DNA of 64,000 nucleotides from Paramoeba atlantica (Eukaryota; Protista; Discosea), in assembly GCA_977017575.1 (NCBI GenBank), contig CDRNVI010000003.1, positions 558,001 to 622,000 on the forward strand. Reading direction: 5' to 3'. Within the stretch, counting starts at the first letter, position 1, and each line of letters starts with the position of its first letter. Position numbers and translations under genes: made by a program. Positions 36,245-60,378 of this stretch are shown here, piece after piece. The notes beneath the pieces were generated by a model. It saw only the letters and a list, made by a program, of their open reading frames with translations, was not told where the DNA came from and did no database searches.

Positions 36245-39200
36245 TTATGCAGCAATGGTCACTGAAGTGGGATCGGCGTCACTCGAACTGCATACTTCAG
36301 TTGGAGCCTCACCATCTTCGTTCCAAAACTCGGAGCTTGGTTGGCTTTGTGCTTCCTCTCCCCATCGATTGTGGCATACGTAGCAGTAGGTTCTCCAAGA
36401 ATAGTTCAGCGTACCACAGAGATGGCATGGAACGGGCTTCTTCTTTACGGTGGATTCGTACAAGGATGTTTTGGGTTTGGGGGATGTACGACGCATGTGG
36501 CAGCTCATACATATGGTGCGGTAGGCGTAGTTCTCCGCATCACACTTTGCACAATGCCAATCTGAATTATGGGGGTACATTCGCGACACAGATGAGGTGC
36601 TGCACGCGTTACATGTAGTGGTTTCATTTTTATTGATAGTCCCACATTTACATAGCCAACTGTTCGAGTCGCTGGACTTCACATCCGGAACAATCATCGC
36701 TGTATGGTCCTTTTCTTTTGTACACGAGTGACACTTCTTGTCGTCTTTTTTATTGTAATTTCGACACGAGAGGCATTTCCAGTCACCCGGAACGAAGTTC
36801 AGTGACCCCGTCGGGTTAAGTTTCAAGTCGCAGGCATCACAATAGGGGTGGTGACGAAAATTTGTTGCCTCACAAGCGACACATTTCCAGTGATCAGCTG
36901 GATGTACGATATTCACCTCTTTCTTCTTGTTACCGCAGCGCACGCAATCGTTTCGTTTCGAAAAGTTCATAACGTTGCATTCTGCACAAATCCATTCCTT
37001 ATTCCGAAGCGCCAAATTGATAATCTCACAATGCTCTGTTTTTTTAGCGCTGCAACGATAGCACGACGACCGGACACGAAAATTTATTGTAAGGCATTCG
37101 CCACACTTCCAATCGCCGTTCAGAATTTTAAACTCAACAAGTTGACACTTGTCATCAAGTGCACGTTGACACCACACGCATACGGCTGACTTGGCATGAT
37201 TCATTTTATCGCAGCCCGCACATTTCCAGTCTCCATAAAAGCTATCCTCCCAACTTAAAGGGGGGACAACGTAGCATTCGTTCGTTTGGCTGGAACTACA
37301 AGAAACACAAAGAGATCTCGCTCGAAAGTTGAGCTTCCTGCAATTCTGACAATACCAATCTCCAGGGGCCTCGACTTTCTTGAATTCGTTTTCCTCCGCA
37401 CCTTGGACGACTAGACACGTATCAGTTTTGCCAGATTGGCATTGAATGCACTTAATTCTTTTAGAAAAGTTTAAAGTTGAGCATTTTTCACAGGTCCAGT
37501 TGCCTACTTTCCAACGTGATTCTGGGATAGAAGCACATTCTGGGCTTCTAGGGGCTTGACAGCCAAAACAGTTTTCCCTATTTCCGTAGTTTGCGCAGCG
37601 GCACTGTGAACAAAACCAATCTCCATGCCTTCTAGGAGTTTCATTTATTTCTTCGCACTCCGAATTTTTTTCAGACTTGCAGTTATAGCAGGTGGATCTA
37701 CTCCGAAGATTCATCATCTTGCAGACTGCACATTTCCAGTCGCCTTGCATTGCTTCAATTTCTACAATTTGAGAATCCGGGCTTTTGACTTTGTTACACC
37801 ATTGACAGGAAGCATCCCATGATAAGTTCATAAGTTGACAGGAATTGCACTTCCAATCTCCGAAAAAGCTATCTTCCCATAGTCTTGCAGGTACAATCGC
37901 ACATTCAAGGTTTTTCTTTTCTTTGCATTTGACACAAGAACTACGTTCCCGCTTGTTATGGCTCTGACACTGCCTACATATCCAGTCTCCTGGAAGTAAA
38001 ATACCGCTGTAGACTTCTCTCATTTTTCTCATTCCAAAAGCGATAGGGCAGTGAGCAGTTCTCGCACTTCTGCACTGCATACAAAGTTGTCTGTGCGCGA
38101 AATTTAACTTTGAACAATGCTGACAAAGCCAATCACCAATCTGGGAGAGAGCAGGAATCTCTGTTTTCGCTGTATCGTCTTTTGGCTTTTTACACTGCGC
38201 ACATTCGTTCGACATGTGAAAAAAATAATTCAGGGCATGACAATAACCACAGGTCCAGTCTCCAGGCTTATACTCACCTTTCATTTCATGGCATGAAGCA
38301 TCTTTTGGAGAAGAACAGGTAACACAAGCACTGTTGCACCGGTAGTTATATGCTTTGCATTGACTGCACTTCCAATCCCCTTGTAAGACCTGTACTTCAA
38401 CGATTTGGCAATCTGTTTTCTTCGCTTCGGAACACCACACACACATAGTACGTTGTAAAGGGTTCATTTGGTCACACGCCCGACAGTGCCAGTCGCCATA
38501 TCGACTCTCCTCCCATGATTTGGCAGGGATAACGGTGCAATCTGGAAGGCGAGGGACATCACAACTTCTACAGCTCACAAAGGAGGGTGACGACGTCTTC
38601 TCGCATGTTTTACATACCCAATCACCGGGTAGCGCTCCATTATCTCCTACTGATCTTGGAACTCTGCCTTCCGTCCGTAAAGTTTGACAAGAGCTGTCCT
38701 TTGTGTACAGACAACGAAGGCATTCCATTCGAGCGCCAAAGTTAACGATTTTGCATTTTGAGCAAACCCAATCACCAGGAAAAAGAACTTTGGGATTAGA
38801 GACATCATTTTGCGCACAGGAAGGGTCTTTTTCTTTTCCACATTTCGTGCATTTCGTTTCGGTACCAAAATTAATGCGTTCACACGAGCATTGCCAATCT
38901 CCCGGTCGTCCCTCCTGAAGAGATCGAGGAAGAATGCTTTCACAATGGGGTGATTTGGCTTCTGAGCAACGAATGCAAATGTCTCTTGACGAAAAATTAA
39001 TCTCTTTACAGTGAACACAAATCCAATCCCCACGTTTAGCCTCAGTGGAAGATATGGCACGCAGAGGTCGTACCGTGGGGGCCAGTTCGGTCAATATTCT
39101 GGCTTCATCGGACTTCGAAGAAAGACACCTGATACAGGACGTTCGCCGCGCATTGTTTGCTTCCTTGCAAGTAGTACATTCCCAATCTCCAAGGCGCGAT

Positions 39201-41263
39201 AGCTCAAAAGGTCTTCGAGGAGGTCCGTACTCCTTGACGCGACAGTCATCCGTTTTTTCTTTCTGGCATTCCGTACACTTTTCGGTACTGCGGAAATTGA
39301 CCGCTTGGCAGGAAGCACATTCCCAGTCGCCTCCTCTTGCGTGTATCACGAATTCGCGCTTGATAATACGACACGTATCCGTCTTCTTAAAGGTACAACC
39401 AAAACATGTCTCGCGACTGCGACGGTTGCATGTGAAACATGTGCAACAAATCCAGTCCCCAGGCATCTCCTGTAGACGCTTTCGTGGCGTCAAAATATCT
39501 GCTGTTGCCTCAGTTATGACTTCACAGGTCTCACTACGAGGTTCTCTGCAGCCAAAGCAGGTTATCATCTGAGAGGAAAAGTTTAACAGAGAACATTTTG
39601 AACAGATCCAATCTCCAACTCTGGTTTTTCCTGGAGGACTCGTCGCTCCTTCAATCGTTATACATTCGTCTGTTTTCGTTGTTGTGCATTTAATACACGA
39701 CGTGCGAACTGCAAAATTACTTAGTCCGCAACTTTGGCAGATCCAATCACCGGGAGATGCTGCGACAACATCCTTGTAAGGGACCGTCTCGACCTCTATA
39801 CCTTTCGCTGCGTAGCACTTGATACAATTAGGACGATTGCGATAATTCAAAGTGGTGCAAGTTGCACAGCGCCAATCCCCCGCCCGAAGACGTTTCCTGC
39901 CAAGCGGCTGTCCAAGAACTGCAGGACGAATTTCTTTACAGCCAAAGCACTCCGTGCGCTCTGAAAAATTTACTGTCTCACACTTCGGACAAACATATTG
40001 CCCAGGTCGCAAAGCAACTACTTCACAATCCGATGATTTGGTTTCGTTACACGCTACGCATGTTTCTCGAGCTTTGAAATTCATTGACCCGCATTTGTTA
40101 CATTTCCAGTCACCGTATCTGTAGCGAATCGCGCGCTTCACGATGATGATGCAATTTTCTGTGTGTTCCGCATTGCAGTTGACGCACAAATTCTTGTCGT
40201 GTGGATTCACAAATTTGCACGACTCGCAAATCCAGTCGTTTGCAGCACAATCTGCGTCCGTTATAGTTTTGCAGGTTTCGTCACGTGTGTACTCGCATTT
40301 AATACATATAGCTCGGCTTCGAAAATTCAAAGTTTCACACTGGGAGCAATTCCAATCGCCGGGACTGCCTTTACGCTGGGGTACGTCCGACACAATCTCG
40401 CATGACTCATCTCGGGGTCGCGAACATGACTCACACTGCTCAGCGCGCATTCTGTTTATAAACTTACAATCAGAGCAGTACCAATCACCAGGGCGTGCTC
40501 TTCGAGGAACAACTGGACCCGCAGAGCTTGGACGTGGCTCACTGCATCGCCTGCATTGCTCATACTCACCGAAGTTGAACGACTTACAGTTTTCGCAGAC
40601 GAATTGTCCTTTTTTCAAAAAGCTCGGTTGAATTTTTGCTGCATCGATTGTCCAGGGCGCAGTGCAGCGCACGCATAAATCCCGTGAGGCCCAATTCTCG
40701 AACTGACATTGTACACAAGTCCAGTCACCAGGAACTGGTCGACGCTCCGCCGGTGGCTTCCACGGAGTTCCATCCGGATGACTCCAACGCGGCGCGTCCT
40801 CGGCTATTGGAGCAAAGCACTGCTTACATTCCATGTTTCTGCAAAAATTTACCATTTCACACTGTTGACACAACCAGTCTCCCGGTTTGGGCTCCGGGGC
40901 AAGCCGCTGCATTCGTCCCCGACCACGTCCTCTGCCACGTCCCCGACCTCCGCGCCCTCGACCGCCCGACCTTCTGCTTAAACTTTCACCAAACTCATCG
41001 TACGTTCGATTTGCACCCCGGCCGCGCCGTCTATCGTACGTAGTGGAAGCGTACTGATCATTTTCTCCTTGAGAAGAATTGTCCTGGTAATAACTCCGAC
41101 CTGAAAAGTGGTATACAGCGACAGTATCCGCTTGCAAGCACGTCTCGTGCAGTTGCTTTCTCGAGAAACTGAAAGTAGGAGGCGATGCTTTTCCAATGTG
41201 ATATTGGAACAAGTCGCGTGAAGCGCCTTTTTGCTTCAACAACACTGCGTAAAAACGGTGCAT
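36245..41263 (-). CDS. Giant RanBP2-type zinc-finger array protein (36 fingers, 1672 aa) with RGG segment
   Basis: 36 W-x-C-x2-C-x3-N-x5-C-x2-C-like units counted by eye; RGRGG stretch; shares DEFGE and W-x-HPDG-x-PW motifs and a terminal NYSWR finger with 34110-35765. Confidence 0.92.
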   Translation of the reverse strand: MHRFYAVLLKQKGASRDLFQYHIGKASPPTFSFSRKQLHETCLQADTVAVYHFSGRSYYQDNSSQGENDQYASTTYDRRRGRGANRTYDEFGESLSRRSGGRGRGGRGRGRGRGRGRMQRLAPEPKPGDWLCQQCEMVNFCRNMECKQCFAPIAEDAPRWSHPDGTPWKPPAERRPVPGDWTCVQCQFENWASRDLCVRCTAPWTIDAAKIQPSFLKKGQFVCENCKSFNFGEYEQCRRCSEPRPSSAGPVVPRRARPGDWYCSDCKFINRMRAEQCESCSRPRDESCEIVSDVPQRKGSPGDWNCSQCETLNFRSRAICIKCEYTRDETCKTITDADCAANDWICESCKFVNPHDKNLCVNCNAEHTENCIIIVKRAIRYRYGDWKCNKCGSMNFKARETCVACNETKSSDCEVVALRPGQYVCPKCETVNFSERTECFGCKEIRPAVLGQPLGRKRLRAGDWRCATCTTLNYRNRPNCIKCYAAKGIEVETVPYKDVVAASPGDWICQSCGLSNFAVRTSCIKCTTTKTDECITIEGATSPPGKTRVGDWICSKCSLLNFSSQMITCFGCREPRSETCEVITEATADILTPRKRLQEMPGDWICCTCFTCNRRSRETCFGCTFKKTDTCRIIKREFVIHARGGDWECASCQAVNFRSTEKCTECQKEKTDDCRVKEYGPPRRPFELSRLGDWECTTCKEANNARRTSCIRCLSSKSDEARILTELAPTVRPLRAISSTEAKRGDWICVHCKEINFSSRDICIRCSEAKSPHCESILPRSLQEGRPGDWQCSCERINFGTETKCTKCGKEKDPSCAQNDVSNPKVLFPGDWVCSKCKIVNFGARMECLRCLYTKDSSCQTLRTEGRVPRSVGDNGALPGDWVCKTCEKTSSPSFVSCRSCDVPRLPDCTVIPAKSWEESRYGDWHCRACDQMNPLQRTMCVWCSEAKKTDCQIVEVQVLQGDWKCSQCKAYNYRCNSACVTCSSPKDASCHEMKGEYKPGDWTCGYCHALNYFFHMSNECAQCKKPKDDTAKTEIPALSQIGDWLCQHCSKLNFAHRQLCMQCRSARTAHCPIAFGMRKMREVYSGILLPGDWICRQCQSHNKRERSSCVKCKEKKNLECAIVPARLWEDSFFGDWKCNSCQLMNLSWDASCQWCNKVKSPDSQIVEIEAMQGDWKCAVCKMMNLRSRSTCYNCKSEKNSECEEINETPRRHGDWFCSQCRCANYGNRENCFGCQAPRSPECASIPESRWKVGNWTCEKCSTLNFSKRIKCIQCQSGKTDTCLVVQGAEENEFKKVEAPGDWYCQNCRKLNFRARSLCVSCSSSQTNECYVVPPLSWEDSFYGDWKCAGCDKMNHAKSAVCVWCQRALDDKCQLVEFKILNGDWKCGECLTINFRVRSSCYRCSAKKTEHCEIINLALRNKEWICAECNVMNFSKRNDCVRCGNKKKEVNIVHPADHWKCVACEATNFRHHPYCDACDLKLNPTGSLNFVPGDWKCLSCRNYNKKDDKKCHSCTKEKDHTAMIVPDVKSSDSNSWLCKCGTINKNETTTCNACSTSSVSRMYPHNSDWHCAKCDAENYAYRTICMSCHMRRTSPKPKTSLYESTVKKKPVPCHLCGTLNYSWRTYCYVCHNRWGEEAQSQPSSEFWNEDGEAPTEVCSSSDADPTSVTIAA

Positions 41264-41366
41264 TTGGGTAGAAAGTTACAATATTTCACTAGAATACTTC
41301 ACTCAGGGGGGAAATAAGGTGTGATAGTTTGCGATTGTAGATGTGTACTAATGTTGTTGTATAATA

Positions 41367-41548
41367 TTGTACCCCCCGTTTAAGCGCACCTCGTTTTTCG
41401 TGAAAAGTGCGCTTAAACGGGGGTCTGAATCAGTACACAAAAAAAACATTGGCGCCGCTTAGCGGCGCCGGAGACTTCACCTCAACTCTGTGTGCGCTTA
41501 AACGGGGGGTCTGACCTTACGGGTGCACTTAAGGGGAGGGGGGGACGG
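41367..41548. mobile_element. pogo-related MITE
   Basis: TA|TTGTACCCCCCGTTTAAGCGCAC ... GTGCACTTAAGGGGAGGGGGGGACGG|TA; internal GTGCGCTTAAACGGGG repeats; matches the pogo end at 7046-7070. Confidence 0.65.
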
Positions 41549-41716
41549 TACATTAAAAATAAAATGTGATTATTCTTTTTAATTTCTTTTTAATTTTGGA
41601 CCACCGTAGCCCCCTTCTATATCCTTTTCTTCTAATATAAACCCTCCGTCACGAATAAGTGACCACAGGCTAAAATCTGTGTTGAGGGGGGTATGGGGGT
41701 ATACCACATTATCACT

Positions 41717-41787
41717 TCTTCGTAAACACGCTTGTTACCAGTCCCAAGCCCGGCACCGCCATATTCGGCGGAGTGTGAGGGTAAAGA
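41717..41787 (+). ncRNA. Twister ribozyme-like sequence (type P5), near-intact
   Basis: TAA 41723-25, P2 ACAC/GTGT, GC 41730-31, P4 CCAG/CCGG, loop TCCCAAGC 41742-49, P5 CCGCC/GGCGG, GAGGG 41777-81. The core GTCCCAAGCCCGG matches the rice twister core as I recall it. Confidence 0.85.
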
Positions 41788-41959
41788 TTTCAATACATCT
41801 ATAGCACGATTATAAACTTAAGAATATAATTGAACTACTTCTTTCTAGTATCCAGTAGAACTACTACATTTAGCTCCATTTAACTAAACAATCTTACACG
41901 CCTGCAAATGTCAGGCATCAATTGAATTCACTTGGTCCCGGCCTGGCAATGCCCATTCT

Positions 41960-43348
41960 CTGTAACGAGGCCCATGGGCTCCGTACCCTTCGGGGTACCA
42001 CCGCCCCAGCATTCGTGCTGGGAGGCCCATGGGCTCCGTGTCCTTCGGGGCACACTTGCCGTTGCATTTATTCATCCTCTGTAACGAGGCCCATGGGCTC
42101 CGTACCCTTCGGCGTACAACCGCCCCAGCATTCGTGCTGAGAGGCCCATGGGCTCCGTACCCTTCGGGGTACCACCGCCCCAGCATTCGTGCTGGGAGGC
42201 CCATGGGCTCCGTACCCTTCGGGGCACACTTGCCGTTGCGTTTATATATTCATCCTCTGTAACGAGGCCCATGGGTTCCGTACCCTTCGGGGTACCACCG
42301 CTCCAGCATACGTGCCCCAGCATTCGTTGCGTTTATTCATCCTCTGTAACGAGGCTCATGGGCTCCGTACCCTTCGGGGTACCACCGCCCCAGCATTCGT
42401 GCTGAGAGGCCCATGGGCTCCGTACCCTTCGGGGTACCACCGCCCCAGCATTCGTGCTGGGAGGCCCATGGGCTCCGTACCCTTCGGGGCACACTTGCCG
42501 TTGCGTTTATATATTCATCCTCTGTAACGAGGCCCATGAGCTCCGTACCCTTCGGGGTACCACCGCCCCAGCATTCGTGCTGAGAGGCCCATGGGCTCCG
42601 TACCCTTCGGGGTACCACCGCCCCAGCATTCGTGCTGGGAGGCCCATGGGCTCCGTGTCCTTCGGGGCACGCTTGCCGTTGCGTTTATATATTCATCCTC
42701 TGTAACGAGGCCCATGGGCTCCGTACCCTTCGGGGTACCACCGCCCCAGCATTCGTGCTGGGGGGCCCATGTGCTCCGTGTCCTTCAGGGCACACTTGCC
42801 GTTGCGTTTATATATTCATCCTCTGTAACGAGGCCCATGGGCTCCGTACCCTTCGGGGTACCACCGCCCCAGCATTCGTGCTGGGGGGCCCATGTGCTCC
42901 GTGTCCTTCGGGGCACACTTGCCGTTGCATTTATTCATCCTCTGTAACGAGGCCCATGGGCTCCGTACCCTTCGGGGTACCACCGCCCCAGCATTCGTGC
43001 CCCAGCATTCGTTGCGTTTATTCATTCTCTGTAACGAGGCCCATGGGCTCCGTACCCTTCGGGGCACACTTGCCGTTGCGTTTATATATTCATCCTCTGT
43101 AACGAGGCCCATGGGTTCCGTACCCTTCGGGGTACCACCGCCCCAGCATACGTGCCCCAGCATTCGTTGCGTTTATTCATCCTCTGTAACGAGGCCCATG
43201 GGCTCCGTACCCTTCGGGGTACCACCGCCCCAGCATTCGTGCTGAGAGGCCCATGGGCTCCGTACCCTTCGGGGTACCACCGCCCCAGCATTCGTGCTGG
43301 GAGGCCCATGGGCTCCGCGTCCTTCGGGGCACACTTGCCGTTGCATTT
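41960..43348 (+). repeat. Mosaic tandem array: 22 copies of a ~29-bp hairpin core with three alternative spacer types
   Basis: Core GAGGCCCATGGGCTCCGT(AC/GT)CCTTCGGGG at 41967, 42022, 42086, 42141, 42196, 42264, 42351, 42406, 42461, 42529, 42584, 42639, 42707, 42762, 42830, 42885, 42949, 43036, 43104, 43191, 43246 and 43301; periods 55, 64/68 and 87 bp. Confidence 0.95.
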
Positions 43349-44070
43349 GCGCTATACATCTTCCTCTCCAGCATGTTTTTTCAATGAAGTGAAAACAGAA
43401 TAAAAACAGAAGGGAGAGGGTGGGAAGTTGTGAGCTGGGAAGTTGTGTGTGCTATGACATGCCTGGCACCGGTCAAAGTAAAAGACTTTTGCAGAAGTCC
43501 TTTTTTGACCACCAACCTCTTAATATCCATTCGTTGATTCCGAACGGGAGTTAGTTATCACCAATAACGTTAGTTATCACCAATTTACAGATCCATGATC
43601 ACACTACCTAAATACCCCCTATTTCGCGTGCTCGTATACAATGTCCGACAGGACCAACGACCGAATATTTCACAAAAAAATTGACTTTGGTGAATCTTGG
43701 TTATATATTGCCGTTGTACTGCATGGTAAGTTGAAGACCTTGTGCACGAAGGCTAGATAACGGCTAAATATGGTCCTATGTACAACCTTAACCTCGGAAC
43801 AACCGTTTCAGTATAAAGGGTGACCCCTTAAAAACGCCAAAAAACGACGATTTCTGGTGTTTTTTGGGGTAAATTGTATTTTTGCGCCTTTTTCGGTCGT
43901 TTTTTATCGGGGTAACTCCTTATACCAAAATAGAGATTCTTGAAAATGTATGCTGCTGAATCACACTTTCTATACTTCACTGCCATTACATCCACTCACG
44001 AGTGACCTCAGGTGCGGGGCTTGCTTGTAACATAAAAAATGAAAATTGAAAAAAATGGTTAGGTGTTCCA

Positions 44071-44420
44071 CAAAAGTCCTTGACTTATGCAAAAGTCCTT
44101 GACTTATGCAATAGTCCTTGACTTGCAGGTCCTTATCCCAGGACAGCGGTACCTAGTTTAGGTGTCTGGAGGCAAGGCCCAACTGCGAGCGAAGCCCACG
44201 TCTGGAGGCAAAAGCCCCCGTTTGCGAGCAAGGCCCAACTGTGAGCGAAGCCCTGGGACAGAATTATATTTTTTAGCGACCCGCACGCTCCAGTCAGGAA
44301 CCACTGAAATTTAAGCCCTAATTGCACTTCTGTCTTGCACCCGGTGAGGCCTCGGAGCTGGGAGAGGCCCCATACCCCACAACTCCCTCATTTTCGGCAT
44401 AGCAACTCCCTCATTTTCGT
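44071..44420. repeat. Short tandem and interleaved direct repeats
   Basis: 19-bp CAAAAGTCCTTGACTTATG x3 (44071, 44090, 44109); GTCTGGAGGCAA x2; GCAAGGCCCAACTGYGAGCGAAGCCC x2; CAACTCCCTCATTTTCG x2. Confidence 0.85.
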
Positions 44421-44730
44421 GTAGAATTTCTCGTTCTGCACTTTCCGCTATTATTTTCTGTCTTAGAGAAACTAGATTTTTCAAAAAATTAAAAATAACG
44501 ATTTTTTGAAAAACGCTTTTTTATGAGGATAAAACTCTCCCTACCTAAAGGGGGTTTGACGCTAGCAGGGAAGCTTATAGTCCCCCTCTCATTAATCATT
44601 ACAAACCTGCAAAAATCGTTAAAGGGATTGTTTATAGAAATTTAATGAGATTATAATTCTGAGTCTCACTTTTATAATTATAAACCTCAAGTTCTTCATT
44701 TTTTATCTAGAAAGACACCTGTACCACATA

Positions 44731-45104
44731 CAGGGGGGTGCACGAAAACAAAGGGCAACGTAGGGGAAGTGTTGCGTTTAGGTGATCCATTACGGCGATA
44801 CTGTCCATCATAAAGGCAGGGGTGATCACAGGGTTGGAGCGACTAGTTGGGGTCCTTGAAACATCACCCGTTTCCTCGTGACGTTGAACCCAACGACAAA
44901 CTGTACAGCTAGTCACATTGTAGTGGCGTGCAGTGGCTCGGATCGATCCCACGCGATAATAGTGTTCAACGAGGAGCATACGATGGGTTAACTTGACCTG
45001 TCCAGCTCTGTAAGAGAGGGGGGGGGGCACGCGGCTACAACGGGAGCACGTGTTAATCCCAGAAATTAACACGACTTTTGTTGACATAACTTAATTTCCC
45101 CCCT
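44731..45104 (-). mobile_element. Tc1/IS630-like remnant (N-terminal HTH only)
   Basis: VEHYYRVGSIRATARHYNVTSCTVCRWVQRHEETG; ends TA|CAGGGGGG and CCCCCCTG|TA. The left end also matches a TIR-like end near 60826. Confidence 0.6.
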
Positions 45105-45624
45105 GTATCCATTGCGTAAAGAATGCATGGAGCAAGATTCCCACTGGGGTTATGGATCATAGTATGGTTCTTAGCTTCAATAAGCGGCTGAAAGCTTCTA
45201 TTGAGAAAAATGGCGAAAAGGCGAAAAAATGGTAGGCGACCCCCCCCTAGGTGTAGGTGTTCAGAATTTGTACCAAGTGTGTGACCCCAAGATATTAGGG
45301 CCTGAGACCTGCAAATTGCAACAAGAATTAGCTAAAACGGCTTTATATACCATAAGTTAGCGTATTTTGTAAAGGTGAATAAATTCTTGTCTAATAAAGT
45401 TTCATACTCAAATTTTACACTTGTACTACTCTGGGTAAGTTTTTATGTTGAAAGGAAAAAGGAACGATGTTCAACTATCGTGAGGCGCAGAAAAAAATGA
45501 CGATCGACTATGGTGAAAAAAGTGGTGCGCTGGAGTTGACAATGGGGTGGTGCACTGGAGTTGAATATCCGGGTGTTCCTCATTGTTCACTTTTTTTCAA
45601 TAATCGAGGGTAGAGCGGTAGTTA

Positions 45625-46538
45625 TAAACCCCGCCCAACGAATAAGTCACCCCCCACTTTTTTTACACGTGAGGGCCTATGGGGGCTCATGCACCACTTT
45701 ATCGTTCAGAATTTCGAGATCTGCACGTTCCCACTATTTCTAGCTCATTTCAAAATGTTAAAAAATTAATTAAAAAATGTAATTGTTTTTTTTCGAAAAA
45801 ATGCCTAAATCCGCATACCGACTGCCAAAAGGGGGGCTTACGCATAGCGGGAAGGTTCTTTTGACGATGAGAAACGGGCAGGGAGTCTCAAAAAAGCATA
45901 AATATGTGGGTAGCACCCGGTCAAACAGCGGCCCCACGTCAAAAAGTACGATGGGCGCCGAAATGTCAAGTTTGGGGGGCTATAGGTGTAGGTTGGAGAC
46001 ACCTAGTTGTTCTCGATAAGGACTCGTCCATCACGAGCATATCTTATGTAAAGACGTTGAAGAAAGTACAATTTCCACAGAATTGTACCTTTCAACAAGA
46101 TGAGGCTACAGCCTCTATGGAGTACATTACGGGTAGAATGAGTGATGTACTTAAAAATTGGCCCCCCAATTCACCTGACCTTTCCCCCATGGAAAACGTT
46201 TGGTCGATGGTCCAGGATGCGGTGGACGAAAAGACTCCATCGGATAAACCTTCACTTATCCGATGTATACGCAAAGCGTGGTCTCGTTTGCCAAAAAAGG
46301 TGATCGATAAAACTGTTTTGAGTTTTGATGCTCGCCTTAGGAAGTGTATAGAACTCAAAGGCGAAAAAGTGACAAAATGATAATTGTAATCTAGAAACGC
46401 TAGTTGTTCTTTGTTTCAGCCCACTCTTAGGTGCGCAAAGTTCCTATGGTGAGATCTGCAAAATGCAACAAAAATGAGCTCAAACGGCCACTCGGCCGAA
46501 AAAAAAGTAGGGGGTGACTTTTCGTTGGGCGGGGTTTA
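45625..46538 (+). mobile_element. Tc1-like element, internally deleted
   Basis: ~40-bp TIRs TAAACCCCGCCCAACGAA(T)AAGTCACCCCC with TA flanks; DDE remnant VWGAIG...FQQDEA...WPPNSPDLSPMENVW...FDARLRKCIELKG. Confidence 0.88.
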
Positions 46539-53738: not shown

Positions 53739-53971
53739 CCCGCCGCCGTTCCCGCCGCCATTCCCGCCGCCGTTCCCGCCGCCATTCCCGCCGCCATTCC
53801 CGCCGCCGTTCCCGCCGCTCTTCCCGTTTTCCCCATCGCTCTCTCCCTCCGCTGCGCTATTTACTGCGCTCCCCGCCCCGCTCCCTCTCACCGGCCCCTT
53901 CCTTGTCTCACTGTCCCATGTTGTGGAGCTACCCGGCGTCAGTAAAACAAGACGTCAAAAAACTAGGGTAG
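53739..53971 (+). repeat. C-rich 12-mer tandem tract followed by a stem-bulge-stem module
   Basis: CCCGCCGCC(G/A)TT repeats at 53739-53820; module CTACCC-GGCGTC...GACGTC-AAAAAACTA-GGGTAG at 53929-53971. Same arrangement at 56370->56000 (minus) and 57040-57380 (plus). Confidence 0.8.
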
Positions 53972-54110
53972 TATCCACGCAACAATTCAAATTTAGGCAG
54001 GGTCGTGGATTAACTTGTTAAACCACGCTGGGGAGTAGCGAACCCCTCCTACCCTGGAGCTGTTAATTATTGGCTTCCTTCATTGGAGGATAATATCGGA
54101 AAACTAATTC

Positions 54111-54231
54111 CTCTCCAAGCGGAGGTCAGCCATAGCTTGCTATGGCTGGCTCTCCGGATACGTCGCAAGACGTATTCGGACTGCCCGTTTGGGGAGTTGA
54201 GGGGCCATAACTTTTCGGAGTCAAAAGGCCC
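54111..54231 (+). ncRNA. Putative structured RNA domain (three-way junction + UUCG hairpin)
   Basis: P1 54111-22/54185-96; P2 54124-36/54139-51; P3 54153-64/54169-80 with GCAA loop. Near-identical inverted copy at ~59450-59571. Confidence 0.6.
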
Positions 54232-54234
54232 AAA

Positions 54235-54511
54235 TCATCATCATCATCATGAAGTTAATAGAGCAGAGGCCAGAGCGGTACGTCTAGCTTTTGAAAGATT
54301 CGTACACCATTTTCACCACGACACGTGTATTGACCTGTACGTAGACAACACATCATGTGTTGCAGCTATCAACCGAAAAATGTCTAAATCCGATGGAATA
54401 ACGACTGAATTGGGAGGACTTTTGCGATACTTGAAAAAGAATGGAGTGTTAGTGCAAGCTCAATACATTTGTTCTAAACAAAACCCAGCAGATCCTATAA
54501 GCAGAATGTAG
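54235..54511 (+). pseudogene. DIRS/VIPER/TATE-type RNase H remnant
   Basis: HEVNRAEARAVRLAF...LYVDNTSCVAAINRK...QYICSKQNPADPISR. Confidence 0.85.
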
Positions 54512-55249
54512 CAACGAAGCTATTAGTATCAAATTGTGTAAAAATCAAATTCAAAAAAAAATTCAATAGAACATTACACCGGAACATACAATGTATCTTA
54601 CAAAAGTTGCAGGAGCAGTGCTGAGTTGGGAGTAGGCGCCTAACTTGGCACGAAACATGCGATCGGGAGTGATGAAGCGAAGTAGTGTACGAGCGATTGG
54701 GTGGTCCCCGCGTGACACCCGTTCGCAAGAGAGTAGATATGCAGATGACATACATGTATATATTTTAGGACGTCCTTATTTTGTTTCAGATTTGTGTTTT
54801 ATATTCATTAGTACGATGCTTATTGAGCTCAAAGTTTTGATTATGTTGTACATAAACATCGTAAAATCATCTATGACAAAACTTGATTTTCTACATCTTA
54901 TACGTGTTCGTATTTCGATGAACAATTCTCAAAGTTTACGGAGAGAATTGGGCGAGAAAGAAGAACCTTATTTATTACCTATACGTGATTGGCCCGGCGG
55001 GCATTGTGCGTGGATTTCCGTTTTGATTCAAACTTTACAGGGATAAATAAATATATTCATGATTTATATTAAAAATTGTTTTTGAACATATATTTTGAAA
55101 GAGCGAACTCAATAACTTTCTATCTTTAGTGTTATTTATCTGCGAACCACGAACGAAAAAATTTACCACGACATCCAAACGAGAATGGAGCGGAAACAGT
55201 AAATCAAATTCGACAGCTGCAAGTACCAAGGCTACTTCCAGGGCACGTA

Positions 55250-55896
55250 ATGCTACGAAAGTACCAGGAGTGGAAGGATCAAGCACATTTCCTACTTCGG
55301 GCAGTGCTACGAATTACGGACCATTCGATGAGGGAAGCTCTTCTAAACCTATGGGGACCGCGAACCTTGGAGACACGGACCAGACTGATAAAGGGCCTAT
55401 CACAAAAAGGTTTTCCACTCAACGAAACCGGTATCGTCTCGTATATGCGACAAATCTCGGTGTCGCTCCAAACAAAAAGAATATACCTAAGTCATTTGAT
55501 TGCAGTCCTAAAAGCGTTAAATCAGTCGACACTGAAAGCGGAAATGTACTCTCATGTCTTGGTAAGGGAGGGCGCGACAGCGCCGTTGCATCAGGCCACA
55601 CCGGTCACGCCGGAACAGCTGCGGCGCGTAATAAGTCACATGACTCAGGATATGGCGGTGGTCACCATGATCGCCTACAAAACGGCCTCCCGCGCCGGCG
55701 AAGTAGCCAACCTTATACGAGCCGATTTCATAATGAATACCCCTTCTCGCGTAATAATATATTGAGGAAGGAAAACCAAGGCAATGAAGGCACAACCTTA
55801 CCGACCGGACAGTTTCTCCGTCATAGAAGGGACTTATACTCCAAGAATTTGTCAGTACGTCGAAACCCTGCGACCACGACAACAGATTATCCCTGA
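55250..55896 (+). pseudogene. Tyrosine recombinase remnant of a VIPER/TATE/DIRS-like retroelement
   Basis: LHQATPVTPEQL...MIAYKTASRAGEVANL (catalytic Arg box); continues past an in-frame TGA as GRKTKAMKAQPYRPDSF, then truncated. Confidence 0.75.
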
Positions 55897-56002
55897 TCCT
55901 GTAATTTTGCACTATACCTTATAAGAATACGAGAAACCTAGAAAAAACCGCATTTAAAAAGCTCATTTTATGCTTTCTAAAAGTTTGTTGCAAGGATTCG
56001 AA

Positions 56003-56370
56003 ATGGGACTGTATATGATACCGGGCGGTGCCACCCATTCCGGCGAAAATGGGGCGCGGCGAAGAGCGAAAGGGTGGCGGAGAGCGCAGCGGAGCGATAG
56101 CGTGGTGGGGAGAACGGCGGGGACACCATGGGCGCGGCGGAGAGCGAGGAGGGGAGCGTGGCGTGGAGTGCAGCCGGTGCCACGGCGGGTGGCGCGGCGG
56201 GTGGCGCGGTGGGTGGCGCGGCGGGTGGCGAGAGCGGGGAGCGCGGGTGGGGAGCTCAGCGGGGAGGGATGCGGGGAGCACGGCGGGGAGAGCGGCGGGT
56301 GGCGCGGCGGAAGCGCGGCAGATAGCACGGTGGGTGGTCAGAGGGAGGGGTGAAGGGGGTCATGGGGGAA
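56003..56370 (-). repeat. Inverted copy of the C-rich 12-mer tract + partial module
   Basis: GCGGGTGGCGCG-type repeats on plus; AATGGGTGGCACCGCCCGGTATC on minus at ~56010-56040. Confidence 0.75.
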
Positions 56371-56409
56371 AAAAACAAAAAAAAAGCAACAAGGTAAAAC
56401 GCTTACTCG

Positions 56410-56530
56410 CTCTTAGCTTTTGCAGATGATGTTGTACTCTGGGCTCAAAACGAAAAACACCATCAACGGGTACTTCAGTGTACTCTACGTCCCCTTAAGT
56501 CGGGAGGCTGCCTGTATGGTCGAGAGCTCT
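56410..56530 (+). pseudogene. Reverse-transcriptase fragment (FADD motif)
   Basis: Manual translation LAFADDVVLWAQNEKHHQRVL. Confidence 0.5.
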
Positions 56531-56647
56531 GCTCTCTCGTGTTGGCAGTGATGCATAGATCATCAACCCCCGCACAGCGACCTACGCTGGAAGTAGGAGA
56601 CCACATCTTTACGGAGACAAATGGTCTGAATTTCTATCTATCTATCT

Positions 56648-56880
56648 TGCCGGAGCGTAAAGGGGTTATCCGCGCTCATCAACAAACCTCCGAGACAAGA
56701 AGTCTCACTTCCCGCCACTCCAGAATACACAATCTCATCACGTGCCCGTTGAAAGTATTCCGCAGCACTCTCCATCTTTCCAGTTTGCCGGAGCGTAAAT
56801 GGGTTAACCGTGCTCATCAACAAACCTTCCAGATGAAAAGTATCACTTCGTACTTTCAACAAGCACGCGACGTTATTGCA
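56648..56880. repeat. Diverged ~138-bp direct duplication
   Basis: TTGCCGGAGCGTAAA(G/T)GGGTTA...GCTCATCAACAAACCT occurs twice. Confidence 0.7.
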
Positions 56881-57039
56881 GACGCGCGTCACACTCGATT
56901 CCTTTTCTCTTCGACGGCCAATTGCCTTGAATCGCGGACGAAAACGCGAATCTTCCGACGATGTGGCATTTAAAAAGATCATGGTAAGAATAGGAAAAAA
57001 AATTCAACAAGGTACAGGACTTCTACTTGCGCTGCTGCT

Positions 57040-57380
57040 GCGCTCCCCGCCGCGCTCTCCCGCCGCCCTCCCGCCGCGCTCTCCCGCCGCCCTCCTGCCG
57101 CGCTCTCCCACCGTGCTCCCCGCCACGCTCCGGCCGCGCCACCCGCCGCGCTCCCCGCCGCGCTCCCCGCCCCCCCTCCTCGACTCCTCCTTAGCCCTTC
57201 TTGGGCGCTGTCCTCCTCGCCGCCCCCGTGTCCCCCCCTGTGCACCCCGTGCCGCCTCTATTACTTGAATGGCACTACCCGGTGTCAAGAAAACAAGACA
57301 CCAAGAAACTAGGGTAGCTGTCCTGCAGAATGGGTGGCACCTCCCGGTATCAAATATAACAAGATACCAAATAATTAGCT
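57040..57380 (+). repeat. C-rich 12-mer tract followed by two stem-bulge-stem modules
   Basis: CCCGCCGCGCTC-type repeats; modules at 57275-57317 and 57338-57378. Confidence 0.8.
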
Positions 57381-57449
57381 TAAGCCGAATGCCCTGACTG
57401 GGCATAGCTCACCCTCTTCTCCCCGCCCACGTACGTTGCCCAGGATGTC

Positions 57450-58518
57450 ACCTAACCCTAGCATCGGATGACGCCATTACACATATTTCCGGCTGAGTGA
57501 CATGTCACGGAAACAACGCCACAATGAAACACCACAGAATGGTAAGACGCATTTATGAACTTTGCCTTAAGGGAGGAATCCCGTGCGAGCTGGAACCCCG
57601 TAATCTGTCGTCCTACAAGTGCACTGTATGTGGTGAATCAATACAAGCCGAAAGACGCCACGAGCATCAACGCACGTGTGGTACCGGTGCCTTGATTCGT
57701 TCGGGTCCAGACATTGTGATACACTGGGCCTCGGGTGACGTTTACTACGACTTCACTATTGTACACGAACTTTCGCCCTCAAACATCGGCAGAAAAGGTA
57801 CACATTGAAGGATGCAATTGGACGCAAAATTAAAACGTACGTGACAACAGAGCTCATCCCATCCAATCAGTTTGTGTGCATCCCCGTCCTGTCCGGCGGG
57901 GCGATGCACGCGAACACGAAGCTCCTGCTGAACACTCTCGCAGACATGTCGGGCGCGGAGCGTGAGACCGTGCTTGAGGACTTTGCTCTCCAACTTCAAG
58001 AATTGAATGGAGACGTAGTGTATTCTCAGCTGAAACAGTTTCTTGCTCCAGCAACAGGATTTGAGAGGCTCACCAGGCCAGGCGATGTGTTTCTCCCCAC
58101 GTATTCCAAGGCTAAAGGCATGGTCCTTGATTTTGCAGTTACCCACGCTCAGCAAACTAAATACAGGGACAAAGTTCGTAACGCTAGCTGGGTAGCTGCA
58201 GGATCATTCGCCGAGCACTACGCCACGGAAAAAAGGGTGTACCAACGGTTGGAGGCTGAGCAGCCATGGATTCACAGCAGGCATGAATTCACAGCCATGG
58301 TGGTAGAGAGCTAGGGCTCCTGGAGCGTGAGCGCAACGTCCGTTCTAAAGGGAGTCGGAAAGAGGCGGGCACAGGCCTCAAATGGGACCCTTACGGAAGA
58401 GCAGGCTACAAATAAATTGTATGCCGAATTGAATGTGACCCTCATGCGAGCACAAGCTCGTATGATGGTTACACGCATGGCTGTGCCCGACCCGAACGAG
58501 CCCATCACGAAAGGATAG
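57450..58518 (+). pseudogene. CRE/SLACS-like non-LTR retrotransposon C-terminal remnants (restriction-like endonuclease domains)
   Basis: CH...KHHRMVRRIYELC...ELEPR...GPDIVI...YDFTIVH...KIKTY; then RPGDVFLP...LDFAVTH...KRVY...FTAMVVES*GSW...LNVTLMRAQARM. One frameshift and one in-frame stop. Confidence 0.82.
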
Positions 58519-59582
58519 TGTCGGACCCAACGGATCCTATGGTGGTGACATAGGCCACGGGTGCTGGTCGGGTCGACAGAGTCTATGCTCACGCCTAGCC
58601 CGCGAGGGCTAGGTACCCCAAGTGAGGTAGTACACGGGCAGTGAATCTCCTCCCCGTCGGCCAGCATCCTGTTTCGCGACCGTGTCGCTGTCGACACAGG
58701 CCCGCGCCTGCGCCCTCCTGTATAACAAGGGAAGGGTTCACAAGTCAGGCCGTGGAGTGGTCGAAAGACCCGGTCCGGAACGCGCGAATGGTTGGGGAGC
58801 CACCTGCAGTCCGGGTGAAACGAAGCTGAGGGAGACCTTACCCTCCCTGAAAAGTTGAAAAGTTGGGTAGGGGAAAGTAGGAAAGTAAGGAGAAAGGTGG
58901 GGAAAAGTATGTCAAGAGGTGAGAAAGTGAGAGAGAAAGGTGAGAAAGAGAGTGAAAAATTTTCTATGTCAAGAGGTGAGAAAGTGAGACAGAAAGAGGA
59001 GAAAAAAAAATTGCTTGTTTTCAATTCATATACCCACCCCAATGGACCTACTTGGTTCGTCTACTGGGTCAAAAGATAGAGGCAATGCCGCGATTCATAC
59101 TTCTCCCCCCTTATTAATTGAAATAAAAATAAAAAATTCTTGGAAATCCGCGCCTTCAAAGAAGGTGGTGCAAGAAAGGAAAAAAAGGGGGGACGGGGGA
59201 CGACGGCGAGGATGGCAGGCGATGTTGTTGTTTTCTTTTCTCTTAAAAGTTGAAACCTAAATGACTACGGGGGGAACGCGCCCCATCGTTCGAAAGAGGA
59301 GAAAGGAAAACAGGTGTTCGTGCATTCTACAGGCGAGGTCTCCTCACATCCACCGGCAAAGTCTCATTGCGTGCGATCGTTGGCATCTTGATTCTAGCTA
59401 ACTCACCCGGCGTCGCACAACAAACTGCTACATGATGAGAAGATGTATTGTGCCTTTTGACTCCGAAGAGTTATGGCCCCTCAACTCCCCAAACGGGCAG
59501 TCCGAATACGTCTTGCGACGTATCCGGAGAGCCAGCCATAGCAAGCTACGGCTGACCTCCGCTTGGAGAGGAGTTAGGTTAC

Positions 59583-60378
59583 AGCTAGGGAGGTGGGGTG
59601 TGCTATACCCCTGCGCCTTAGGTAATGCAAATAAGGCGCCCCTTGACCAAAAAAACCACTCTATCTTTTGAGGGTGGATAAAAAAAACACATCACACATT
59701 CCAAAAAATTTCCCGAATGGCACCCACCCTAGTTTCTTAGTACCTTGTTATATTCGGTACCGGGAGGTGCCACCCATTCTGCATTGTCGGAATGGCATCT
59801 ACCCTAACTATTTAGTGCCTCGGTTTGCTGGCACCGGGCAGTGTCGTCCATATTGTTTTCATTGTGCTCACCCTAGCTATTTAGCGCCTTGTTATGCGAC
59901 GCCGGGTGAGTTAGCTCGGGAGGCTGGGATCGCTAAGTCCCATCATCCGACATACAACGTAAGCCGGACGCTACATACCTAGGGTCTAGGTCAGGGCATT
60001 CGACTTTTGGTCGGATGATGGGGCGTAGCGACCCTAGCTTCCCTAGCTAACTCACCCGGCGTCGCATAACAAGACGCTAAATAACTAGGGTGAGCACGAT
60101 GAAAACAATATGGACGACACTACCCGGTGCCAGCAAAACAAGGCACTAAATAATTAGGGTAGATGCCATTCCGACAATGCAGAATGGGTGGCACCGCCCG
60201 GTACCGAATATAACAAGGTACTAAGAAACTAGGGTGGGTGCCATTCGGGCTAATTTTTGGAATGTGTGTGTGTGTTTTTTACCCACCCTCAAAAGATAGA
60301 GTGGTTTTTTTTGGTCAAGGGGCACCTTATTTGCATTACCTAAGGTGCAGGGGTATAGCGCACCCCACCTCCCTAGCT
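59583..60378. repeat. Large inverted repeat: ~368-bp arms (59583-59950 / 60011-60378), 60-bp spacer, three modules per arm
   Basis: Arms can be aligned by eye end to end with scattered substitutions. Confidence 0.92.

Follow-up and report, generated by a model that had tools for sequence, protein, structure and literature searches.

Locus and array units

The window analysed here (the whole stretch of 64,000 nt from Paramoeba atlantica contig CDRNVI010000003.1) carries on its plus strand a tandem array of 22 short units rich in UUCG-capped hairpins, which stands behind a motif of the twister ribozyme type. Twister, array and the sequences that join them form a copy of a dispersed repeat family, to which we give the name F1 and whose members are probably related to retroelements with tyrosine recombinases. 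The parts of this copy, and the region that abuts on it, are as follows:

41707..41723, plus strand: initial 17 nt of the element, composed of CATTATCAC and the 5' strand of helix P1 (start of homology)
41716..41789, plus strand: type-P1 twister motif, slightly decayed (box, covariation and Rfam)
41790..41969, plus strand: unique leader from twister to array (alignment across loci)
41970-43348, plus strand: 22-unit tandem array (Tandem Repeats Finder, unit splitting and stem counts)
43349..43470, plus strand: post-array tail remnant (homology to the family)
43476..46000, no strand: mosaic made of further dispersed repeat families, outside the element (abuts the truncation point)

Splitting at the palindrome GCCCATGGGC yields exactly 22 units, the first at 41970, and overlapping arrays with periods of 55, 119, 123, 155, 178 and 265 are reported by Tandem Repeats Finder between 41954 and 43329. 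The array and the unit types given in a preliminary description of this DNA are thereby confirmed. Every unit consists of a GAGG-CC-CAUG-GG-CUCC hairpin (the palindrome) and a c(UUCG)g hairpin. The twelve A units (55 nt) read GCCCATGGGC-TCC-GTACCC-TTCG-GGGTAC followed by CCCAGCA-TTCG-TGCTGGG or a variant of it, this being hairpin 2 of the A units (the third if the palindrome hairpin is counted). Seven B units (64 or 68 nt), among them the final unit of the array, which runs into the tail, combine GTGTCC-TTCG-GGGCAC with a T-rich spacer, and the three C units (87 nt) are A/B hybrids with a broken hairpin 2. The hybrid stem GTACCC/GGGCAC that had been described for units 5, 9 and 18 is present in all three. 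It had been taken as the mark of crossovers, but these units are identical 68-nt copies within higher-order repeats and therefore probably go back to a single crossover, amplified afterwards.

Of the 32 plus-strand TTCG-capped hairpins of the window (stem of at least 4), 28 fall in the array; the minus strand has five in the whole window and none in the array. The motif in the stretch 53929-60240 of the window lacks the GAGG...CU hairpin. A 30-nt core of the unit occurs 216 times in the 45.7-Mb genome, as against 0 times for the reversed control. Open reading frames (ORFs) of 112-156 aa inside the array were rejected as coding because unit lengths of 55, 64, 68 and 87 nt change the frame from unit to unit.

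The twister ribozyme

The twister box GTCCCAAGCCCGG occupies 41741-41753; as had been noted, the twister lies on the strand of the array, its end being some 180 nt upstream of unit 1. The box has 40 occurrences in the genome (0 for the control). Twenty aligned box sites describe a type-P1 twister without P3 and with a variable extra P5 hairpin (CCGCC-ATATTC-GGCGG in the window); ACATTATCAC is found immediately 5' of P1. By inspection of these 20 loci P1 covaries (CUUC/GAAG, GCUC/GAGC, ACUUCA/UGAAGU, CCUUCU/AGAAGG), and the P5 stem, which is entirely different between families, covaries on the same inspection. The core blocks U^AA, CGC, CCGGUCCCAAGCCCGG, AAG and GAGGG all align in the family members.

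At its gathering threshold Rfam finds no match in the window or in nine related loci. In a permissive search the intact relatives match Rfam twister-P1 (RF03160, clan CL00120) with 33-38 bits and E values of about 1e-6, the best scores being 33.4 bits (E 6.6e-6) and 37.8 bits (E 2.2e-6). The absence of P3 and an inserted P5 hairpin account for the low scores. In the window the only twister match is a Twister-P5 alignment of 17 bits (41680-41753), discarded as a wrong permutation that borrows an upstream GAGGG at 41684; the correct type-P1 architecture uses the GAGGG at 41777-41781.

On these alignments the motif is a type-P1 twister ribozyme, for which self-cleavage is predicted. The site, read from the U^AA of the relatives in their alignment with twister-P1, would be T41723^A41724, 17 nt inside the element. 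In the window the core reads ACCAGUCCCAAGCCCGG, with one G>A at 41740 relative to the family, and A stands for G both there (an A.C in P4) and at 41783 (a C.A in P1).

Family F1 and its relatives

Twister and 266-nt leader of the window copy recur at 15 loci with 89-98% identity. The array lies about 180 nt behind a twister, in the same orientation, in 15 of the 17 array loci examined, the other two being 5'-truncated. Homology among nine independent insertions begins at (A)CATTATCAC, corresponding to window position 41707, with different flanks upstream; loose ends of short contigs of unspecified kind at 41706 and 43476 match the boundaries of the repeat. The flanks of nine insertions, compared at filled sites, are diverse and reveal no obvious common target-site duplication (TSD).

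The F1 reference (locus L055, contig C26) is 2730 nt long, including an array of 12 units. Reverse-complement matches link its nt 1062-1105 with nt 1-45 (89%) and the adjacent nt 1104-1220 with nt 2614-2730, the last 117 nt (97%), so that this internal complementary region (ICR) matches the joined termini. An internally deleted reverse transcriptase (RT) remnant follows; when L055 was checked for coding content, neither gag nor recombinase was present. The RT remnants match the RT of locus L038 at 46-49% amino-acid identity. L038, with L037, represents a related autonomous family which encodes tyrosine recombinase and RT/RNase H ORFs. Its Pfam matches are below threshold (Phage_int_SAM_4 7e-4, Phage_integrase 9e-3, RVT_1 8e-5, RVT_3 2e-3), and the Atlas feature scores are 0.98 for tyrosine recombinases and 0.94-0.96 for RVT_1/RT_RNaseH clusters, the nearest RT clusters being from Euglenozoa. 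PDB sequence searches with the recombinase and RT ORFs came back blank. Since the autonomous relatives combine a tyrosine recombinase with RT/RNase H, the family is regarded as DIRS-like.

These results bear on what kind of element the ribozyme and the array belong to. The preliminary description had made them the 5' leader of a retroelement, and one unit on one strand at 15 of 17 loci is what was found; its analogy to SLACS/CZAR does not hold, because these are non-LTR elements (LTR, long terminal repeat), whereas F1 has an ICR and RT kin beside a tyrosine recombinase. Its other suggestion was a retrozyme-like, circular element. A retrozyme-like RNA cut at both ends and circularised, or a SLACS/CZAR-type non-LTR 5' untranslated region, would suit the fact that F1 copies are non-coding and ribozyme-bearing, and a twister is known at the 5' end of a Schistosoma non-LTR element (PMC8501958). 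Each element has, however, a single sense-strand twister, other twister-like stretches being degenerate and the copy in the ICR inverted as well; the RT remnant is akin to an RT that stands beside a tyrosine recombinase; and no contig joints indicating circles were seen (among DNA-type contigs only). We give this explanation hardly any credence. A centromeric role, also raised earlier, and a plain satellite were rejected as well, all arrays examined being at most 2.8 kb, dispersed and always inside an element. So was a free-standing RNA gene, the array being the leader repeat of a 3'-truncated F1 copy.

Origin and copy number of the array

The final 18 nt of the leader (TCATTCTCTGTAACGAG) reappear at the end of every B spacer, and in the spacer as a whole the beginning of the post-array tail (ACTTGCCGTTGCATTT...) is fused with the end of the leader (...TTCATCCTCTGTAACGAG). 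From this fusion it follows that the repeating A+B dimer (119-123 nt) arose by tandem duplication of a segment from leader end to tail start which already held two hairpin modules; L041/L042 still show the state with two units. The order of units is regular at some loci (L051: 1A 2B six times) and mosaic at others.

The number of units per locus ranges from 2 to 45, and it differs in five of the seven pairs of loci with common flanks, for example 22 (window) vs 11 (contig C30), 21 vs 12 and 24 vs 44. In the first of these pairs (G000:C30:1184923-1187291 vs window 41264-44390) both flanks are 95-99% identical; further on the C30 locus has about 14 kb of extra DNA relative to the window. Because many F1 loci fall into such flank-sharing pairs, the assembly possibly contains both haplotypes, or else large duplications of recent date. 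The drift in copy number is minisatellite behaviour after insertion, and array length is probably unconstrained, changing via unequal crossing-over or slippage.

The same drift is what one would expect if the array were a neutral minisatellite, in which a duplicated leader hairpin grew by slippage or unequal exchange without any role in RNA, its stems being kept compensated by quasi-palindrome template switching and by descent. A purely neutral origin is a serious rival to a function of the hairpins, although on all the evidence we consider it rather unlikely; the data on strand and on other families given below bear on it from both sides.

Stem covariation and strand

Among 220 F1 units the main stem is GUACCC/GGGUAC in 76, GUGUCC/GGGCAC with one U.G in 36, and the fully Watson-Crick GUGUCC/GGACAC in 54. 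Two pairs have thus changed on both sides, A-U to G-C and C-G via U.G to U-A. Overall, 92.8% of the cells are paired, and the covariation is 0.187 vs 0.142 for shuffled units, with 0 of 500 shuffles as high, in a control in which the kinship of the units remains. In 215 of the 220 units hairpin 1 is closed by C-G and capped by UUCG on the sense strand; in hairpin 2 the closing pair is A-U.

The preliminary description had argued for the plus strand from the wobble pair and from the loops. The first argument fails within F1, where 39 units with a plus-strand G.U stand against 38 with a plus-strand A.C (a G.U on the minus strand). As for the loops, in the 1340 nt that follow the twister at 28 loci there are 194 TTCG-capped hairpins in sense and five in antisense, and in every family the UUCG loops and the GAGG...CU hairpins described below lie on the twister strand. 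Here and in what follows the family survey comprises 28 of at least 40 twister loci. Folding of units 1-5 gives -141.2 kcal/mol (z -6.4) for the plus and -139.2 kcal/mol (z -3.85) for the minus strand, so that an argument from predicted energies would be marginal.

The equal numbers of G.U and A.C intermediates, and the near equality of the strands in minimum free energy, fit growth without an RNA role, and the 194 to 5 bias does not. The energies also allow the hairpins to matter as DNA, either in minus-strand complementary DNA (cDNA), where the loop becomes cCGAAGg containing d(C-GAA-G), or as cruciforms or recombinase sites in the duplex. The mini-hairpin d(GCGAAGC) is very stable, and the palindrome GCCCATGGGC is strand-symmetric. 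Yet the counterparts of the F1 palindrome in other families are non-palindromic loops, no recombination junctions fall within the units, and on the minus strand a long-lived U.G pair common to F1b, F3 and F4 would become a mismatch, C.A. As aligned, this pair does favour the sense strand, and we hold a DNA or cDNA role to be very improbable.

Leader modules in other families and in an environmental relative

Sense-strand arrays of UUCG hairpins stand between twister and ICR in four of seven families. In the autonomous family F2 the corresponding place is taken by a 78-nt tandem array, which numbers 4 to 23 hairpins per copy, its half-unit consisting of the palindrome CCTCGAGG and GUCC-UUCG-GGAC or the compensated GUUC-UUCG-GAAC. 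Families F3 and F4 have 124-nt arrays with GGUCUU-UUCG-AAGACU, GGUCA-UUCG-UGACU and GGUCA-UUCG-UGGCU. Two side observations concern further leaders: that of F7 (L036:400-1100; G000:C4:568000-577900) has a 208-nt tandem repeat in at least four copies without UUCG hairpins, and that of F6 (L035) has repeats of about 100 nt containing hairpins of the type GGUCC-UUYG-GACU.

When the units are aligned, the first two hairpins of F3/F4 fall opposite the head of the F1 unit, with GAGG, CTCC and GTGTCC...GCAC in common and 96% of the cells of the module alignment paired. The loops differ, being CAUG and UUCG in F1, UUCG and CGAG in F3, and UCUUGU and CGAG in F4; F1 variants have resolved the U.G mentioned above to C-G or U-A. 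The F1 module consists of a GAGG...CUCC stem-bulge-stem hairpin and, behind it, a GUGUCC...GGGCAC hairpin; by this alignment it is homologous to leader modules of other twister-headed families. UUCG itself is not the conserved feature, because homologous hairpins elsewhere use CGAG, CAUG and UCUUGU loops.

The first hairpin of the module can be followed further. GCCCATGGGC is the F1 version of a hairpin of the form GAGG, inner stem, loop, inner stem, CU, the loops of which are non-palindromic in F2, F5 and F6. In a table gathered with a pairing filter its inner stems are CC/GG, UCC/GGA, UUC/GAA, UCUU/AAGA, UCA/UGA and UCU/AGA. They differ among families and remain complementary, a result that sits badly with neutral growth. 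In seven family representatives the sense leaders contain 43 of these hairpins and the antisense ones two; the rest of the window has about 0.2 per kb.

The GAGG and CU flanks are conserved across six families, and inner stem and loop vary. Such a pattern fits a binding site as well as it would a spacer. The GAGG...CUCC and UUCG hairpins might be multimerised putative sites for a Gag-like protein or the RT, serving in packaging or priming, and a larger number of sites would then give non-autonomous copies an advantage in the competition for proteins supplied in trans; that the non-coding F1 keeps and expands the module agrees with this. The environmental relative described next has an array without the GAGG motif, however, array length is unstable even after insertion, and no autonomous partner with F1-type termini was found among the 28 surveyed twister loci. 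We therefore judge a protein-binding platform to be distinctly unlikely.

A first metagenome pattern, which included CATTATCAC, gave no match. A pattern scan recovered three metagenome contigs (L061, L062, L063) with the same P3-less, P5-bearing type-P1 twister. L061 (Ga0169931_10319762, 112-644) shows, in order, a 5' end, the twister (37.8 bits), one GGUCG-UUCG-UGACU hairpin, an array of 11.8 copies of 23 nt with unrelated hairpins and without the GAGG motif, and a 60-nt inverted copy (92%) of the 5' end. Since the order is the same and the array unrelated, the layout of twister, array and ICR is conserved while the sequence of the array is not. That local hairpin arrays occupy one and the same place in at least four families whose sequences differ, and again in an environmental element whose unit is unrelated, is hard to reconcile with a minisatellite that arose without an RNA role.

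Interpretation and proposed role

Taken together, it seems probable to us, with considerable room for doubt, that the array is the expanded leader repeat of a defective, non-autonomous F1 member, that F1 belongs to a twister-headed, tyrosine-recombinase (DIRS-like) group, and that the hairpins act in the sense RNA.

Several points weigh against this. In the one possible RNA run that was compared, no match to the stretch appeared. The twister is below the Rfam gathering threshold (67.2 bits) everywhere, and two of the seven families (F6 and F7) are without UUCG hairpins. Stem-breaking variants are common in dead copies (GCACCC/GGGTAC 18 times, GTACCC/GGGCAC 14 times, and the C units, which destroy hairpin 2); such free amplification of mismatched units is what a neutral minisatellite would display. 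Tandem duplication, together with duplicate loci, inflates every count, and compensatory changes in inverted repeats can come from template-switch mutation without selection. Covariation of the second hairpin of the module (hairpin B) across families is not significant, 88-115 of 500 shuffles being as high, which again suits the neutral view, and the GAGG...CU (hairpin A) table, given the filter used, describes complementarity and does not test it. Finally, the spacer or insulator role that the hairpins could have, as set out below, is drawn only from their position and from thermodynamic prediction.

If the array is nevertheless a leader repeat that acts in the sense RNA, its mode of action may be sketched as follows. 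The RNA of the element would be made by read-through from host transcription, and the twister would free its 5' end 17 nt inside the element. The 5' end lost in this way would later be templated by the ICR, whose antisense match covers nt 1-45 and with them the 5' half of the twister. Because the ICR competes with the fold of the ribozyme, hairpins between the two could insulate them and later hold the partners close. In the predicted fold of the first 1230 nt of L055, nt 1-48 pair with the ICR and the array occupies the enclosed loop; the UUCG hairpins persist in the centroid structure. In the sense RNA, fast-folding, self-contained hairpins might thus be a structured spacer or cis-signal that lies between twister and ICR, the array delaying or insulating ICR competition during transcription and then keeping twister and ICR partners near one another. 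A spacer role would explain why position and hairpin character are conserved although sequence, loop type and copy number are free.

In its strongest form this proposal makes the arrays a selected kinetic and structural insulator in an undescribed class of ribozyme-headed tyrosine-recombinase elements: the twister would cut before the ICR is made, 5' end and ICR would then be held together for a template switch that rebuilds the 17 nt, and array length would tune the balance between the two. We regard this full version as unlikely. The hairpins probably do matter to the RNA of the element, though the copy in the window is dead.

State and surroundings of the window copy

The copy spans 41707 to about 43470 and has neither an ICR nor any ORF of the element. 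Its leader contains at 41941-41948 a GCCTGGCA box that is conserved in families F1-F4. Two further observations concern this box: with its flank (CGCTTGGTCCCGGCCTGGCA) it resembles a shortened direct copy of the twister core, and as GCCTGGCA(C) it precedes the array in F1-F4 (L025, L038, L033, L034) and recurs at both ends of the ICR. The tail remnant stops directly after a second GCCTGGCACC box (43461-43470), a few nt before the start of the ICR in intact copies. Homology of the tail to 12 other loci is limited to query positions 1-136, about 122 nt being common with the family; according to the alignments intact copies extend about 1.8 kb beyond the truncation point, and a search elsewhere in the 64-kb window for the remaining part of the element did not find it. 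The window copy is, to judge from its structure, a dead fossil, 3'-truncated before the ICR and with two substitutions in the twister that are expected to be destabilising. With a weakened twister, and with the ICR and the entire 3' part lost, it could not support the mechanism proposed above.

The intergenic region 41264-46000 is a nest of repeats by the 5' end of a minus-strand RanBP2 zinc-finger gene (36245-41263). Between the start of this gene and the element is a dispersed repeat of about 180 bp (41360-41560) that resembles a miniature inverted-repeat transposable element (MITE), has an internal inverted repeat and is present in at least 40 copies with 83-91% identity. The mosaic at 43476-46000 is composed of at least four other dispersed repeat families.

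Significance

For annotation, the finding means that a "structured RNA array" of this kind belongs to the content of a repeat element and is not a non-coding RNA gene of the host. Such arrays are also hypervariable markers in the genome. Should they prove functional, they would illustrate how a ribozyme and a sequence antisense to it can coexist in one element, and would offer a natural example of hairpin insulation of a self-cleaving RNA.

Comparison with known systems

The closest likeness is to DIRS1, Ngaro and VIPER of trypanosomes, with which the families described here share the combination of tyrosine recombinase and RT/RNase H in the autonomous relatives and, in family members, an ICR matching both termini. 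SIRE is a short non-coding derivative which coexists with the coding VIPER, and here too a short non-coding family coexists with coding elements. The difference is that a twister opens the present elements and that arrays of short hairpins stand between this ribozyme and the ICR. In the literature searched, neither a twister head nor hairpin arrays between ribozyme and ICR were found for tyrosine-recombinase retroelements, and no paper was found that pairs the twister with tyrosine-recombinase/DIRS elements or with kinetoplastids.

Ribozyme-headed non-LTR elements are represented by R2 and L1Tc with their ribozymes like that of hepatitis delta virus (HDV). In Perere-3 of Schistosoma (PMC8501958) a ribozyme of the twister class stands at the head of a retrotransposon, forms part of its transcript and releases the 5' end of the element. 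The class of ribozyme and its place at the head of a retrotransposon are thus shared; Perere-3, however, is a target-primed reverse transcription (TPRT) element in which the TSD forms part of P1, whereas the elements here are recombinase-based, are predicted to be cut 17 nt inside and have a hairpin array next to the ribozyme. Retrozymes are non-autonomous, non-coding retroelements with a small self-cleaving ribozyme (PMC4918200); they have hammerheads in both LTRs and circular RNAs, in contrast to the single twister of F1. With SLACS/CZAR the likeness is confined to the 5' tandem repeats, those elements having a non-LTR RT with endonuclease and inserting into spliced-leader genes, while F1 has an ICR, recombinase-linked RT kin and diverse flanks.

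Tandem repeats are common in the 5' parts of retroelements, as in the monomers of mouse L1, the variable number tandem repeat of SVA and the 5' repeats of SLACS, and like these the F1 array is a variable-number 5' repeat whose copy number differs among insertions. Its units differ from promoter monomers in being short, UUCG-capped, covarying hairpins with a position fixed relative to ribozyme and ICR. The c(UUCG)g loop is an extra-stable RNA tetraloop; hairpin 1 of the F1 units conforms to it, and hairpin 2, with its A-U closing pair, differs. What is new here is the origin of the array, its homology to the leader modules of other families, and the conserved layout of twister, array and ICR, which extends to an environmental relative.

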